From NCBI GenBank assembly GCA_013416795.1, contig RQSC01000004.1, forward strand, positions 102,234 through 107,467: a DNA stretch of 5,234 bases, in the 5' to 3' direction. The DNA is from Prasinococcaceae sp. CCMP 1430 (Eukaryota; Plantae; Prasinodermophyta). The position numbers were made by a program, and so were the translations under genes. The notes under the pieces are model-generated. The model worked only from the letters and a program-made list of their open reading frames with translations. It was not told the origin of the DNA and ran no database searches. Positions 225 through 5,234 of the stretch are shown one piece after another (position 1 is the stretch's first letter; each line of letters starts with the position of its first letter).

Positions 225-899
225 TCACTCGCGGATGGAGTCTGGGTCCTCTCTGAGCACAGCGTTCAAGCGCTCCTCCTCAACGTCTTCGGCGACGTCC
301 TCGCCGAGACCGAGCCGTGCCTCGGACTCTGTGTCGTCGCCGTCGGCGATTGCGGCGTCGGCCTGTTCGGCGCTGCGAATTTCCTCGCGCAGCTCGTAGA
401 GATCGTGCTCCAGCCGCGCGCGCCCGGCCCTGCGAGGGTCGACCTCGGCACCCCCGCGCCTTCCACCGCCAAGAAGCCCGCCGAGCCCGCCTCGCAGCCC
501 TCCCCCTAAGTTGCTGCTCGCCCCGTCGGCGTCGGCTCCCCCGGCGCTGCCGAGCGTCTTCTCCAGGTCGTCCTGCGCACCCTTGAGCAGTGCCTCCACG
601 CGTGCGAGCTCATCTGTGAGGCGGTCTACGCGCGCCTCGCACGCGCTCGCCCTGTGCGCCAGCACGGCGTCGCCGGAGCTTGCGCGTCCCATGTCGGCCA
701 CATGCGCCTCCAGCTCGTCGAGGCGGCGACGCGACACCGCGAGCTCAGCCTCGGCGGCGTCCGCCCTCCAGGAGGCTTCGCGAGCCACGTCCTGCATCCG
801 CAGCGCGCGCGTGCGCGCCACCGAGAGATCTGCGCTCTGCCCCGCCCACGCGACCGCCACCGCCCGCACCGCGGCGCAGGCCGCCGCCGCCGCGAGCAT
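225..899 (-). CDS. Hypothetical coiled-coil protein; the 5' end may extend into the N gap
   Basis: 224-aa ORF with GC3-biased codons. It has heptad-like Ala/Glu/Leu/Arg segments (RRLDELEAHVADM, RVDRLTDELARVEALLK, RLEHDLYELREEIR), a Gly-rich linker and an acidic C-terminus. The stop is TGA at 227-225. No family recognised. Confidence 0.7.
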   Translation of the reverse strand: MLAAAAACAAVRAVAVAWAGQSADLSVARTRALRMQDVAREASWRADAAEAELAVSRRRLDELEAHVADMGRASSGDAVLAHRASACEARVDRLTDELARVEALLKGAQDDLEKTLGSAGGADADGASSNLGGGLRGGLGGLLGGGRRGGAEVDPRRAGRARLEHDLYELREEIRSAEQADAAIADGDDTESEARLGLGEDVAEDVEEERLNAVLREDPDSIRE

Positions 900-906
900 G
901 AGCGCG

Positions 907-1080
907 NNNNNNNNNNNNNNNNNNNNNNNNNNNNNNNNNNNNNNNNNNNNNNNNNNNNNNNNNNNNNNNNNNNNNNNNNNNNNNNNNNNNNNNNNNNNNN
1001 NNNNNNNNNNNNNNNNNNNNNNNNNNNNNNNNNNNNNNNNNNNNNNNNNNNNNNNNNNNNNNNNNNNNNNNNNNNNNNNN
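907..1080. other. Assembly gap (174 N)
   Basis: Run of N; it hides the region between two divergent genes. Confidence 1.
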
Positions 1081-1108: not shown

Positions 1109-1397
1109 CGCGCTCGACGCGCCGCCGCCGGGCGCCGAGGTGCTCGTCGAGTACTCGGAGGCGGAGCCGGACCTCACGGACGACTTCATCGAGCTAGCGG
1201 ATGCGCTCGAGGACGCGCTTCCCGACGTCAGGGTGGAGGGCAACATCCCGCCGATCGGCGAGCCGCGGCAGGGCGCGTTCGAGGTGCGCACGGGCGGCAT
1301 CATGCTGCACTCGCGCCTCGGCACCGGCGAGATGCCGCGGCACATCGCGCTCGTGAAGAGGCTGCAGGACATCCTAGCGGAGGAGGCGGACGAGTAG
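1109..1397 (+). CDS. Last exon of an Rdx-family (SelW/SelT/SelH-like, thioredoxin-like fold) protein lacking the CxxC/CxxU motif
   Basis: The translation VLVEYSEAEP…ELADALEDALPDVRVEG…GAFEVRTGGIMLHSRLGTGEMP follows the Rdx pattern V-x-V-x-Y-(C-x-x-C/U)…LA-x-x-L…G-x-FEV…L-x-S-[KR]…G-x-x-P. The stop is TAG at 1395-1397. An in-frame TGA at 1101-1103 followed by CAG at 1106-1108 suggests a splice acceptor, so upstream exons probably lie in the gap. Confidence 0.72.
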
Positions 1398-1730: not shown

Positions 1731-3024
1731 CTAGTCGAAGAGCTCGGAGAGCATCATGCCCGCGAGCAGGCCTCCGCCGATGCCGACCCCCACGCCCACG
1801 CCGCTGCCCGTGCCGCCGCCGCCGCGACCGCGGTGGACGTGGCCGTGGCGGGCGCCTGCCCCGTACGCCGCCTGCGGCTGCTGCGCGTAGACGACGCGCT
1901 GCTGCACCGGCTGCTGGTAGACGACCTGCGGTTGCTGCTGCATGACCATCCGCGGCTGAGCCTGCACGTACTGCGTCGGCTGCTGCACGACCATCCGCGG
2001 CTGCGCCTGCGCGTACTGGGGGTGAGCCACGACCGCGGGGGGCGGCGGCTGCGCGTACTGCGGCGGGTACGCCGCCTGCGGCTGCGCGTACTGCAGCTGC
2101 TGCGGCGGCTGCGCGTACTGCTGCTGGGCGGGCTGCGGCGGGGCGTACCCCTGCTGCGGCACCTGGGGCGGAGCGCTGGGCTCCACTCTGCCGGCGCCCT
2201 CCCTGGCCTTGGCCTTTTGCACGGCCATCCACTCCTTGAGCGAGTCGAACGCGGCCGTCCACTCGGCGAGGGTGATCTTGCCGTCCTTGTGCAGGTCGAG
2301 CGAGGCGAAGAGCTCCATGATGTCCGCCTTCGTGGCCTGCGGGATGAGCTCCGCCATCGCCCGGCAGAGCTCCTCGAAATCGATGGACCCCGGGTTGTCG
2401 GCGTCGCACTGGTAGAAGAGCGTCTCGGCCGTCTGGCGCGTCACGCCGCCGCCCTGCGCGCACGCGCACGCGCACACACGCGCGCGAGCACGCGCACGTC
2501 CGCACGCGCACACGGGCACGCACACACGCACGCGGGAGAAGCATGCGCGCCCAGGAGGACGGGGGGGGGGGGCGGTGCGGGGGGGTAGCCGCGGTCAGCA
2601 TGCAGCCAGCGCCTCACGGTTGCCCCCTGCGACGCAAGGGGCTAGGGCGGAGAGGGGGGTCGCGTGTGCGCGCGAGAGAGAGGAAGAGAGAGAGAGAGAG
2701 CTCTTGTAGTCGCACCGCGCATCTCACCCTGTCCTGGGCGGGCGCCGCCGCCGCGGGCGGCTGCTGCGATTGCTGCTGCGCGGCCCCCTGTCCGGGCTGG
2801 TAGCCCTCCGGCGGCAGCGGCACCTGCACGATGTCGCCGGCCTTGAGGCCCTGCGGCACGTCGAACTCGCACGTGGCGCCCGCATTGGGCAGGCCCTGCG
2901 GCACGGCGACCGCGAGGCGCATGCCCGCGCTCACGCCCGGCGGCAGCGCCACGGCGAACGTCCCCGAGCGCTCCGCCTCCGCGGCGGACTGCGTCATGGG
3001 CTGCTGCGCGGGGCGCTGCTGCAT
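1731..3024 (-). CDS. Spliced EF-hand protein, exons 3024-2728 and 2453-1731. It has N-terminal VxVPxG..AG repeats, two EF-hands, a Gln/Pro/Tyr-rich region and a Gly-hydrophobic C-terminus.
   Basis: The EF loops are DADNPGSIDFEE and DLHKDGKITLAE, each flanked by helices. The phase-0 splice joins …PAQDR|GGGVTRQ in frame. The stop is TAG at 1733-1731. The start is uncertain: ATG 3024 (cacc ATG), ATG 3039, or an upstream exon. Confidence 0.8.
1934..2018 (-). repeat. Coding tandem duplication: two 40-nt copies, 45-nt period, encoding QY(A/V)QAQPRMV(V/M)QQ
   Basis: 1934-1973 and 1979-2018 differ at 3 positions. Related GGCTGCGCGTACTG (QYAQP) units recur between 2047 and 2120. Confidence 0.85.
2454..2727 (-). 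other. Spliceosomal intron (274 nt) of the EF-hand gene
   Basis: Donor AGG|GTGAGA at 2727, branch-like GCTGAC near 2599-2594, acceptor GCGCAG| at 2454. It contains a (CT)n tract, a C12 run and (GT/GC)n repeats. Removing it keeps the reading frame. Confidence 0.8.
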
Positions 3025-3117
3025 GGTGCTGCGCCCCATCAGCGGGACGGCCCGTGGGGCGCCGACGCGCGCGCCGAGTGTGGCGCGCGCGCGCCCCAGA
3101 CGGAGACGCGCCCGGCA

Positions 3118-3326
<209 letters not shown>

Positions 3327-3461
3327 CGGGCGGCAGCGCCCGCGCACCAGGGGAGCCACACAGCGTTTTTTTTGTCGCGCCAATGCGTTTTGATGGGGCG
3401 CCGTTCCCCGAAGGTCTCGGCGCACCCACCGGGGCGCAAGCGCAAGAGAGCTCGTACAGGC

Positions 3462-3482
3462 GGGGGGGGGGGGGGGGGGGGG
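3462..3482. repeat. G21 homopolymer
   Basis: Seen directly. A similar G12 run lies at 2561-2572. Confidence 0.95.
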
Positions 3483-3899
3483 AGCGCGGTTCCGAGGCAG
3501 GACCCCGCCCGCCCCCAGCATCTCGGCACGTCGCGTCGCGCACGGGGTGCCTTGGCGCGGCGTGTGCGCGGGCGCGCGGGCGCAGCAGCGCAGGCGGTGT
3601 GGGGCTGTTGAGCAGTTGGCGGCTTTTTGTGACTGCCGGCGAGGCTGCCGAGCGCTCACTCGATACCCTCGGCTGCGCCACAACGCGCACGTCGCGTCCC
3701 CCATCCCCACTCCCCCTGCCCTCTTCCCACCCGGCGACGCCGACGGCAGGCGCACGGGCCGCCGGTGCGACATGCTCTCGCAGCTCGCGCGGCGCGCGGC
3801 CGGAGTGGCACGAGGGAGCGTGTGGGGCGTCCGGAGAGACGAGCCTCGACTGCAGCCCGAAGCGACGACACCAGGCCATGCAGTAGCCGCGCTCGGTGA

Positions 3900-4901
3900 T
3901 GCGAGGTTGTTGTTGTTGAGCGCTGCCCTGACCACGTCCCTGTCGATCTGGGACTGGGCGAGCCCTGGAGGGGCCAGGATGGTGTAGTACTCTGCGTCCT
4001 CTTCCAGACGCTCGACGTACGTAGCCAGACTGTTGCCACAGTCGTGGAAGAGGGAGCATGCCTCCATGGAGCGGCGCAGGTCCTCGTGGGCCGATGCAGA
4101 GGCCACATAGCGGAGCTTGAGCTCGTCCAGGAAGGCCAGCACAGAGGGCTGGTCGTCTGCTGAGCAGAAGGCGCCCGGCCGCTCGTCGCGTAGGGAGTAC
4201 CAGGTGGCAGCGCTACCCTTGAGGCGCGTACTGAGCTCGTGGATCAGGACGGAATCAGGGACGCCGCCTGCCCGGTGGCCAGCCCAGTGTTGGCGCAGGT
4301 GGCGAGTGTACCTGCGGGCCTTGCAGATGAAGTCGGCCACCTGCCGGGGCTGGTCGGGGCTGCCGGTAGGCTCGAACGCCTGGGGCAGGTGGGCGTCGTG
4401 GCCCTTGCAGAAGGCCACAGGGGCAGCGGTGGGCGCCTCGTTCAGGTGTAGGCGCGCCAGAGCTGCAGAGAGCGCCGTGCGCACCGTGTGCTGCTCAGCG
4501 CTCTGCAGAGCGTCGCCCGCGTGTGCGAGGAACGCATCAGCGAGTGCGGCAGCGCGGTCATGGACCGCGGTGCGCTGCTCGTGCCCCCTGACCGTCCCCT
4601 GGGGGGAGGCAGGCAGGGAGGTGAGCGCCGTCAGTGCCGGCAAGGGCGCAGCGGACGGCGTCGCCGCAGACGGGGCTGCGTCGGGCGGTGCACGCAGGCG
4701 GGTGAGCGCCTCTTGCAGCCGTTGAGTCTCCAGCTGCTGGTTGGCGAGCAGCTCGCTCAGCTCGCTCAGCTGGGTGGCGTGAGCGGCCTGGGCCGCCTGC
4801 TGGGCGGCCTGGGTCGTCTCCAGAGTGTCCAGGCGCTGCGCAGCAGCCGTAGCCTGCCGCGTGGTGGGCGCCTGGGGGGTGGTTGCGTCGTCGGCAGCCA
4901 T
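3900..4901 (-). CDS. gag: Retrotransposon Gag-like capsid protein (Ty3/gypsy Retrotrans_gag type). The recognisable part is about 330 aa; the frame stays open to 3039.
   Basis: The ATG at 4901 has a good context (gccgctATGG). An N-terminal coiled coil (QRLDTLETTQ…LQEALTRL) is followed by capsid-like motifs: FEPTGSPDQPRQVADFI, LSTRLKGSAATWY, VLAFLDELKLRY, SLATYVERLEEDA, DVVRAAL. No CCHC knuckle is visible. Confidence 0.75.
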
Positions 4902-5185
4902 AGCGGCGGTGCGGCGCAGGGGGATGCGTGTGCAGCGCGCGCTGCGCACGCCCCGGCTTCTGTCCTCCAATGAGGGGAGTAAGGTGCCTCTAGAGCGCGC
5001 TAGAGGGGAGGGGTGACACAAGGAGTGCTGTGGAACGTCTCAAGTGTGGCCCCTAGCGAGAGGGGCCCCGATCTTACCGTTGCGGCGCGTGCGCGCAGCG
5101 CACGCGCGCGTACGCGCAAGATTCCGCTCGGGGAACCGCGCGGCGGATAAGATCGCCTGAACCCTGCCTGTGTACCCTAACTAGG

Positions 5186-5213
5186 TTAGGGTTAGGGTTA
5201 GGGTTTAGGGTTT
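5186..5213 (+). repeat. Short telomeric-type repeat block: (TTAGGG)3 TTTAGGG TTT
   Basis: Read directly. It is preceded by an inverted ACCCTAAC (5174-5181) and followed by 21 nt of non-telomeric sequence. The - strand reads AAACCCTAAACCCTAA, which is telo-box-like. Confidence 0.9.
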
Positions 5214-5234
5214 GCGACATGTTTGTGCCTTTCA

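Follow-up and report, generated by a model that had tools for sequence, protein, structure and literature searches.

Organization of the locus

The window analysed here (the whole stretch of 5,234 nucleotides) ends on its right side in a piece of a retrotransposon that is read on the minus strand. From the window edge inwards, a long terminal repeat (LTR) with a telomere-like block near its start is followed by a primer-binding-site (PBS)-like motif, a leader and the beginning of a gag gene; similarity to other members of the family then ceases, and the DNA that follows leads to a host gene (Table 1). This neighbour, an EF-hand gene modelled with two exons, has the gag fragment about 870 nt upstream of it. 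As a scaffold, the window contains a gap of 174 N at 907-1080. Except in stretches that overlap this gap, its GC content is 64-77%, which fits the 69.8% GC of the Prasinoderma coloniale genome, a genome with 6.5% repeats (PMC7455551). Long ORFs that are open by chance are found in all six frames of the window.

An ATG at 4901 on the minus strand starts a frame that remains open as far as 3039. Between 4901 and 3909 this frame contains no stop codon and no frameshift. The possibility that the whole “long ORF” down to 3039 might be gag was considered and rejected: the segment 3039-3908 has no relatives, its translation is rich in Arg, Ala, Pro and Ser and crosses simple repeats (a poly-G run at 3462-3482 and a 200-nt CA-type microsatellite at 3118-3320), and the frame can be attributed to chance in DNA with 72% GC. 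The CA microsatellite is the sole part of 3039-3908 that matches any other locus (L001 and L006; related loci are given by L numbers throughout).

A preliminary description of this DNA had noted a block of (CCCTAA)n, a hairpin-rich leader of about 270 nt and a gag-like ORF without pol, and had proposed that they form a gag-only unit. The individual components were confirmed. The block is present, albeit short; 272 nt (4902-5173) separate it from the gag ATG; and a tblastn search for pol in the window was negative. When the RNA corresponding to 4902-5234 was folded, its z-score was −4.55, and none of 100 shuffled sequences was equally stable.

Table 1. Features at the right end of the window, listed from the window edge inwards.
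Feature	Positions	Strand	Description or basis
5′ LTR, 264 nt	4971..5234	−	TGAAAGG at the window edge (5234) to CCCCTCA at 4971
Putative U3 (promoter part of the LTR)	5091..5234	−	Window LTR aligned to the ends of L002 and L007-L009
Telomere-like block in putative U3	5174..5213	−	Two CCCTAAA-type and about three CCCTAA-type units, then inverted TTAGGGT (8-bp palindrome)
Putative R (putative transcript start/end site)	5077..5090	−	Contig-end repeat and LTR alignment
Putative U5 with conserved hairpins	4971..5076	−	LTR alignment and RNA folding
PBS-like motif	4951..4969	−	TGGAGGACAGAAGCC..., 1 nt past the terminal CA of the LTR
Short untranslated leader with GC palindrome	4902..4950	−	Precedes the gag ATG
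gag, N-terminal ~331 codons only	3909..4901	−	Coiled coil (~4695-4862), Pro/Ala linker, helical region
Breakpoint at (AAC)4 run	3893..3911	−	Similarity to all family members ends
DNA outside the element	3039..3908	−	GC-rich intergenic DNA upstream of the host gene; gag frame open by chance

Relatives of the element and identification of the LTR

The closest relative of the fragment is found in L001, a 92%-identical copy of window positions 5233-3911 that goes on into a CCHC knuckle, a protease (PR) and the start of a reverse transcriptase (RT). Its LTR (L001 9003-9265) shows 95% identity to that of the window. Full-length relatives are also available. L002, L007, L008 and L009 represent the same 5.95-kb contig, obtained from four samples with two assemblers (assemblies ERZ17098505, ERZ17099871, ERZ27287754 and ERZ27287791). 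They carry the LTR-PBS-gag module of the window, behind which lie regions for protease, RT, RNase H and integrase, then a purine tract and finally a second occurrence of the LTR. In the L002 pol, Pfam matches were obtained for Asp_protease_2 (1.3e-8), RT (3.5e-22), RNase H (7.8e-25) and integrase (3.2e-19). A third, more distant lineage is represented by L010, whose pol is about 44% identical and where the order is purine run, LTR, PBS-like motif and gag. The gene order of the relatives supports the view, already put forward in the preliminary description, that the locus holds a retroelement of the Ty3/gypsy kind and that the ORF is its gag.

The closest pol relatives of the family show 37-45% identity and bear a chromodomain; an entry annotated as ‘Transposon Ty3-G Gag-Pol polyprotein [Vitis vinifera]’ matches pol at 31%. 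No chromodomain was detected with Pfam in the integrase tail of the window's family. A Tudor-like tail on the L002 integrase was suspected by eye and found no Pfam support. For two of the pol relatives, P0036 and P0038, a faint match to PF21743 (Tudor) is listed.

In the sister lineage, homologues of the terminal sequence of the window lie upstream of gag in L003 (329-548) and L006 (1-227); they are about 220-227 nt long, with ends of the type TGAGAGG...CCCCTCA. In L002, the segment 5833-5951, located past pol and after the purine tract, continues into L002 1-119 and is 97-98% identical to the pre-gag segments L003 329-447 and L006 1-119. The repeat-bearing sequence thus precedes gag and recurs behind the purine tract that follows pol, which identifies it as an LTR. 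Its ends are imperfect terminal inverted repeats. A second LTR was sought in the window and not found, and among the copies recovered none combines two separate LTRs with target-site duplications; LTRs are collapsed in these assemblies.

Neighbouring signals are also shared. A TGG-initiated, PBS-like motif is located at the equivalent place in L002, L003, L006 and L010, that is, in three lineages if the window is included, and a purine run directly precedes the LTR in L002 and L010. A tRNA scan for a partner of the PBS-like motif gave a single match, which lies inside a coding region and has a 3′ end that does not match the motif. Several hairpins of U5 and the leader are kept in both the window lineage and its sister. 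One U5 stem is of GGCCCC type in one lineage and of GGCGCC type in the other, with pairing preserved; two compensatory pairs were counted among five sequences, a comparison of weak statistical power.

The four 5.95-kb contigs begin and stop at one and the same LTR position and carry a 14-nt terminal direct repeat. Such an arrangement matches the order R-U5-PBS-gag-pol-PPT-U3-R that characterizes the genomic RNA of retrotransposons, and the 14-mer may tentatively be taken as R. From alignment with these contigs we infer the limits of U3, R and U5 given in Table 1. A PBS function for the TGG-initiated motif and a promoter role for the telomere-like repeat are likewise putative.

A telomere-like module inside the LTR

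On the plus strand, Tandem Repeats Finder detects at 5184-5212 a repeat of period 6, with 4.7 copies and 91% matches. The hexamer TTAGGG is found at 5186, 5192, 5198 and 5205, four times where 0.65 single matches would be expected in the whole window. A CCCTAA at 5175, in inverted orientation, pairs with the repeat as an 8-bp palindrome interrupted by a 3-nt spacer, and the order on the plus strand of 5174-5213 is therefore inverted CCCTAA-type unit, spacer, and four TTAGGG/TTTAGGG units. The minus strand of the block contains the plant telo-box core AAACCCTAA.

The block does not reach the window edge: 22 nt of non-telomeric sequence lie in between, and across copies the distance of the repeat from the LTR start is 18-22 nt. 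L001 keeps the block, with one deletion of 1 nt with respect to the window. In L002, L003, L006 and L007, a telomere-like palindrome and tandem units are found at the equivalent place of the LTR in a different arrangement, and the LTR of L010 opens with TGTAAACCCTAG, which is telo-box-like. The telomere-type heptamer is present in the LTRs, and occurs just once more across some 25 kb of flanking sequence. Judged from these comparisons, the telomere-like repeat is an intrinsic component of the LTR, within U3, and neither a telomere nor a cap added by telomerase. That three diverged lineages share telomere- or telo-box-like motifs close to the 5′ limit of U3 is a mildly new observation; the limited library of literature searched yielded no earlier description of telomere repeats within gypsy LTRs.

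Relative to the predicted transcript start, the block spans −86 to −43 in L002 and, by alignment, about −122 to −80 in the window; the motifs are probably located upstream of the transcription start. Because of this position, and because the heptamer is almost confined to LTRs, a cis-regulatory role in U3 is proposed: some 80-120 nt upstream of the transcript start, the repeat would behave as a telo-box-like element of the LTR promoter. The idea of a telo-box promoter, contained in the preliminary description, can be retained insofar as the repeat lies in the putative promoter half of the LTR; the promoter would belong, however, to a transposon and not to a host gene.

The copies for which flanking DNA is available seem not to lie at chromosome ends. 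The element has a thioredoxin gene as neighbour in L001 and a pyruvate phosphate dikinase gene in L006, and the products of both cluster at 90% identity or more with Prasinoderma coloniale proteins; L001 contains 9 kb of gene-bearing DNA beyond the LTR start; and the copy in L003 follows an unrelated ORF. A pelagophyte host, considered at first on account of GC content, was discarded in view of these clusters. As far as these short contigs show, the copies in L001, L003 and L006 are interstitial. Pol is found in relatives, the same LTR lies on either side, and copies sit beside ordinary genes with the repeat as a part of an ordinary LTR, which is essentially the arrangement that the preliminary description had set out beforehand as contrary to its proposal.

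A gag protein recognized by its context

The window gag is 65-69% identical to P0001 and P0002 and 47-61% identical to the gag homologue of L002 (gagB). Beyond the family, it is an orphan for the methods employed, in which interrupted ORFs were searched piece by piece. Pfam matched no gag family on the window ORF. The helical region of the window gag includes the stretch that corresponds to a weak match between the L002 homologue and Retrotrans_gag (E = 0.11). Word-index searches with the whole gag and with its conserved half against 5.8 billion proteins returned just three metagenomic fragments of the family, and a HMMER search of 1.84 billion representative proteins with a gag profile returned pieces of the same family plus P0007 and P0008, which were rejected as spurious matches to repetitive bacterial proteins. 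Nothing was found when JGI metagenome contigs were scanned with the gag profile and with pol, and a sequence search of the PDB with gag gave nothing significant. The gag of L010 was considered as a bridge to known gags and discarded, as it shows no detectable similarity to the gag of the window's family.

Structure prediction was of limited help. AlphaFold (AF2) models built from alignments of three to four sequences had low confidence (pLDDT 56 and 50), and their sole confident part was the coiled-coil helix 14-69. Comparison of both models with the PDB using Foldseek gave no significant match; for the capsid-region model, itself of low confidence, the top match was the C-terminal domain of the rat Arc capsid, with an E value of 1.6. 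The identification of the ORF as gag rests on its position and context, on the CCHC knuckle of the relatives (found in L002 gagB, P0005 and L001) and on all-helical predictions; in other words, sequence methods fail to recognize the gag of this family, and it is called from context. The same applies to the gypsy-type capsid mentioned in the preliminary description, which finds support in the PR-RT-RNaseH-INT order encoded behind the same gag in relatives, and not in the protein itself, which lacks a Pfam match.

The copy is truncated

Similarity in blastn stops at 3911 when the window is compared with L001 and at 3922 when it is compared with L002. In a three-way DNA alignment, the window departs at about 3905-3911, and L001 and L002 stay alike beyond that point. 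Since similarity ends at around 3893-3911 while full-length relatives continue, the window gag is truncated. Past the end point of the window, the L002 gag has more helices, a Pro-rich linker and the CCHC knuckle, whose position lies past the break. The preliminary description of gag as an intact-looking ORF is thus correct for the open frame from 4901, and incorrect for the gene, of which about 331 codons are left. Comparable decay is found elsewhere, with internal deletions in L004 and L006. The latter contig, moreover, starts exactly on the first LTR base, and because of this coincidence the right edge of the window, again the first base of an LTR, is most simply read as a contig break at a repeat boundary.

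A side observation that does not sit easily with a dead element concerns the reading frame: the window gag is open over 331 codons, whereas about 20 indel events (27 gap columns) are found within the L001 gag. Substitutions between the two copies are distributed over the three codon positions as 8, 14 and 26, with enrichment of the third. Some residual coding use of the window gag is thus conceivable in strict terms.

Origin of the fragment

Altogether, we consider it very probable that 3909-5234 (minus strand) is a dead, 3′-truncated copy belonging to an autonomous family of Ty3/gypsy-type LTR retrotransposons in Prasinoderma-like green algae. The surviving parts would be the 5′ LTR, the PBS-like site, the short leader and the first 60-62% or so of gag. 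The C-terminal capsid helices and CCHC knuckle of gag, pol, the purine tract and the 3′ LTR would have been lost at about 3893-3911 through deletion or rearrangement, an assembly join being less likely. The last possibility deserves attention, however, as the breakpoint might be a chimeric join between a multi-copy retrotransposon and unique DNA, with the real element being complete or located elsewhere. The scaffold has a gap, the junction falls within a short (AAC)n run, and assemblers do break at the first LTR base, as seen both in the window and in L006. On the other hand, the sequence itself shows no mark of a misjoin, and truncated or internally deleted copies beside host genes are found independently in L004 and L006, which indicates that such remnants are real in these genomes. 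We regard an artefact as improbable.

The alternatives that invoke a special biology for the fragment are less probable still. A non-autonomous LTR element with gag only, or a telomere-associated element, might be moved in trans and use its 5′ C-strand repeats for attachment to telomeres or for capping. Gag without pol in the window would be in keeping with such an element, as would the location of the repeat near the 5′ end with its G-rich strand toward the window edge, and deleted derivatives are common in the family. The unit lacks, however, a 3′ LTR, and its gag is cut in the capsid region, without the CCHC knuckle of its relatives; neither is the 5′ telomeric cap terminal, as the repeat is internal to an LTR that is also found at interstitial sites. 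Furthermore, the polymerase of the family is that of an integrase-bearing Ty3/gypsy element, not of a non-LTR or Penelope-like one. Both the gag-only unit and the telomere-associated element proposed in the preliminary description are therefore very unlikely. A true chromosome end, or a break healed by telomerase beside a retroelement, is hardly credible at all. The G-rich strand does run 5′ to 3′ toward the edge, and the window stops shortly past the repeat; yet the array has only about 4.7 units, the 22 nt that follow are conserved in L001, where gene-bearing DNA continues, and in the sister lineage the block is placed between the purine tract and the remaining LTR.

We assign a similarly slight probability to domestication or exaptation of a capsid-derived gene that would be driven by the LTR or by a telo-box promoter. 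The open frame of the window gag, set against the indels of its 92%-identical counterpart, the preference for third codon positions and the retention of an LTR promoter upstream would be in keeping with such a gene. However, a third-position bias is expected for two descendants of active elements, and the indels of L001 may be errors, as coverage of this contig is 0.85x. In addition, the protein is truncated and runs into simple-repeat junk without a defined end; no orthologue in another species appeared in the searches of 5.8 billion and 1.84 billion proteins; LTR and PBS-like site are still attached; and the nearest relative belongs to a transposon at another locus, one that bears pol.

A truncated Ty3/gypsy copy being the preferred reading, the locus would hold neither a telomere nor a telomeric element with gag only, nor a domesticated capsid: it would be a broken conventional LTR retrotransposon at a contig end. 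One practical consequence is that, in automated telomere calling, short interstitial runs of telomere type at contig ends can be LTR edges. A second aspect concerns the motifs of U3, which provide the testable hypothesis that LTR promoters use a telo-box code. The telo-box is bound by telomere-repeat proteins of TRB/Myb type. A bolder possibility, which we put forward with considerable doubt, is that the telomere- or telo-box-like module has been selected as a functional part of this retrotransposon clade and recruits the Myb/TRB-type telomere-repeat-binding factor of the alga to the LTR. If so, transcription of the LTR might be coupled to the growth-linked telo-box regulon of the host, or else new copies might be marked for chromatin silencing. 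In either case, a transposon would have borrowed the recognition code of telomere proteins, and the borrowing would be conserved in three lineages whose pol is only about 44% identical.

Comparison with known systems

No catalogue entry was found for this Ty3/gypsy family of Prasinoderma, a member of the third phylum of green plants. Its likeness to the Metaviridae of algae and plants (chromovirus-like branch) includes the TG...CA LTR, the PBS-like site and the purine tract, as well as two traits seen in family relatives, the CCHC knuckle of gag and the PR-RT-RNaseH-INT order. The differences are the orphan sequence of gag, which has a coiled coil in its N-terminal part; a very short LTR of 220-264 nt whose U3 contains a telomere-like module; the lack of a detected chromodomain; and, for the window copy, the fact that it is only a 5′ fragment.

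The TR-GAG elements of plants (Chaparro et al. 2015, PMC4350172) resemble the window copy in being of LTR type with gag as the sole coding region. They have two LTRs and a complete gag; in contrast, a single LTR is present in the window, and its gag ends before the zinc knuckle. Domesticated gags of the Arc and PEG10 type are single-copy host genes with an intact ORF and without LTRs, kept in synteny by purifying selection, whereas in the window the LTR and PBS-like site are attached and the ORF is truncated.

With short telomeric repeats close to its 5′ end, the element is reminiscent of HeT-A/TART, of the Penelope-like Athena, Coprina and Terminons, and of MoTeR/FoTeR. These telomere-associated elements are non-LTR or Penelope-like, are located at chromosome ends and carry the repeats at their extreme terminus (PMC12477314, PMC12857005, PMC5537684). 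Here, in contrast, the repeats are found inside the LTR of an integrase-encoding element at interstitial sites.

The resemblance to the plant telo-box is of another kind: the same core is present on the minus strand of the putative U3 of the window, upstream of the predicted start, and in an organism of the green lineage. Unlike the telo-box of host promoters, the motif described here belongs to a transposon LTR and is both tandem and inverted.

Structure and coding capacity of the sister-lineage contigs

Four contigs of the sister lineage (L002, L007, L008 and L009), obtained from four samples with two assemblers, are 5951–5953 nt long and 99.9% identical over their whole length. In all four, both contig ends fall at one shared point inside the LTR, and a 14-nt direct repeat is found at the termini. 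As judged from sequence, their layout would be R-U5...U3-R, that of genomic RNA or cDNA rather than that of a genomic locus.

A single reading frame in L007 holds gag, the protease and RT-RH-INT. In both L007 and L002, the end of gag is marked by a TGA codon, and two additional in-frame TAG stops are found where sister copies have sense codons. Such a common frame, interrupted by one TGA and two TAG codons, suggests an expression strategy based on read-through, and also suggests that the element, though abundantly recovered, is a defective copy.

When L001, the contig with a 92%-identical copy of the window element, was aligned with L002 (L001 9147–11727 against L002 1–2660), LTR and gag showed identities of 0.59–0.73, which is a comparison between two lineages. 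From around L002 1900–2000 (protease) onward, identity rises abruptly to 0.96–0.99. The jump reflects either a recombinant element whose LTR-gag module has been swapped or a chimeric contig of low coverage.

L003, another contig with a sister-lineage LTR, carries a 126-aa ORF beside that LTR. No Pfam match was obtained for this ORF, but on visual inspection it looks like the C-terminal region of a reverse transcriptase of the non-LTR type. Hence, the LTR may be a nested insertion.

Features located in the window and in related contigs
Feature	Sequence	Position	Strand	Remarks
224-aa ORF	window	225–899	−	runs into N gap
N run (scaffold gap), 174 nt	window	907–1080		
85-aa ORF, Rdx (selenoprotein W/T-like) match	window	1140–1397	+	directly after N gap
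Predicted EF-hand host gene, at least two exons	window	1731–3037	−	ORF, repeat and Pfam analysis
CA/CACG microsatellite, 200 nt	window	3118–3320		between EF-hand gene and transposon fragment
Poly-G run, 21 nt	window	3462–3482		between EF-hand gene and transposon fragment
Stop codons	L007	771, 1677, 2532		L002: each −2
126-aa ORF, abutted by the LTR	L003	3–383		TARA contig
LTR-to-gag region of more distant relative	L010	5936–6231		together with proteins P0036–P0038

Host DNA beside the transposon fragment

Exon 1 of the EF-hand gene starts with an ATG at 3037 or 3022. The intron (about 280 nt) is GC-rich, with abundant GCGCAC-type repeats (around 2460–2740), and the second exon encodes an EF-hand pair (Pfam, 6e-9) followed by a repetitive Gln/Pro-rich tail. 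The CA repeat also matches intergenic DNA of L001 and L006, the latter a further contig with a sister-lineage LTR.

On the left side of the window, the 85-aa ORF matches positions 15–74 of the 74-position Rdx profile (E = 1.1e-5); its N-terminal redox motif would lie inside the N gap. The 224-aa ORF gave no above-threshold match to any family; towards its C-terminus the sequence is acidic and coiled-coil-like.

A third lineage

The pol of L010 is about 44% identical to that of the window family. Its LTR, of about 174 nt, begins with TGTAAACCCTAG followed by C-rich degenerate repeats, and the CCCTAA motif occurs twice immediately upstream of the gag ATG. Relatives have chromodomains, and a faint Tudor match (PF21743) falls on the integrase tail in P0036 and P0038. 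Sequence similarity between the gag of L010 and that of the window family is not detectable; both begin with a coiled coil.
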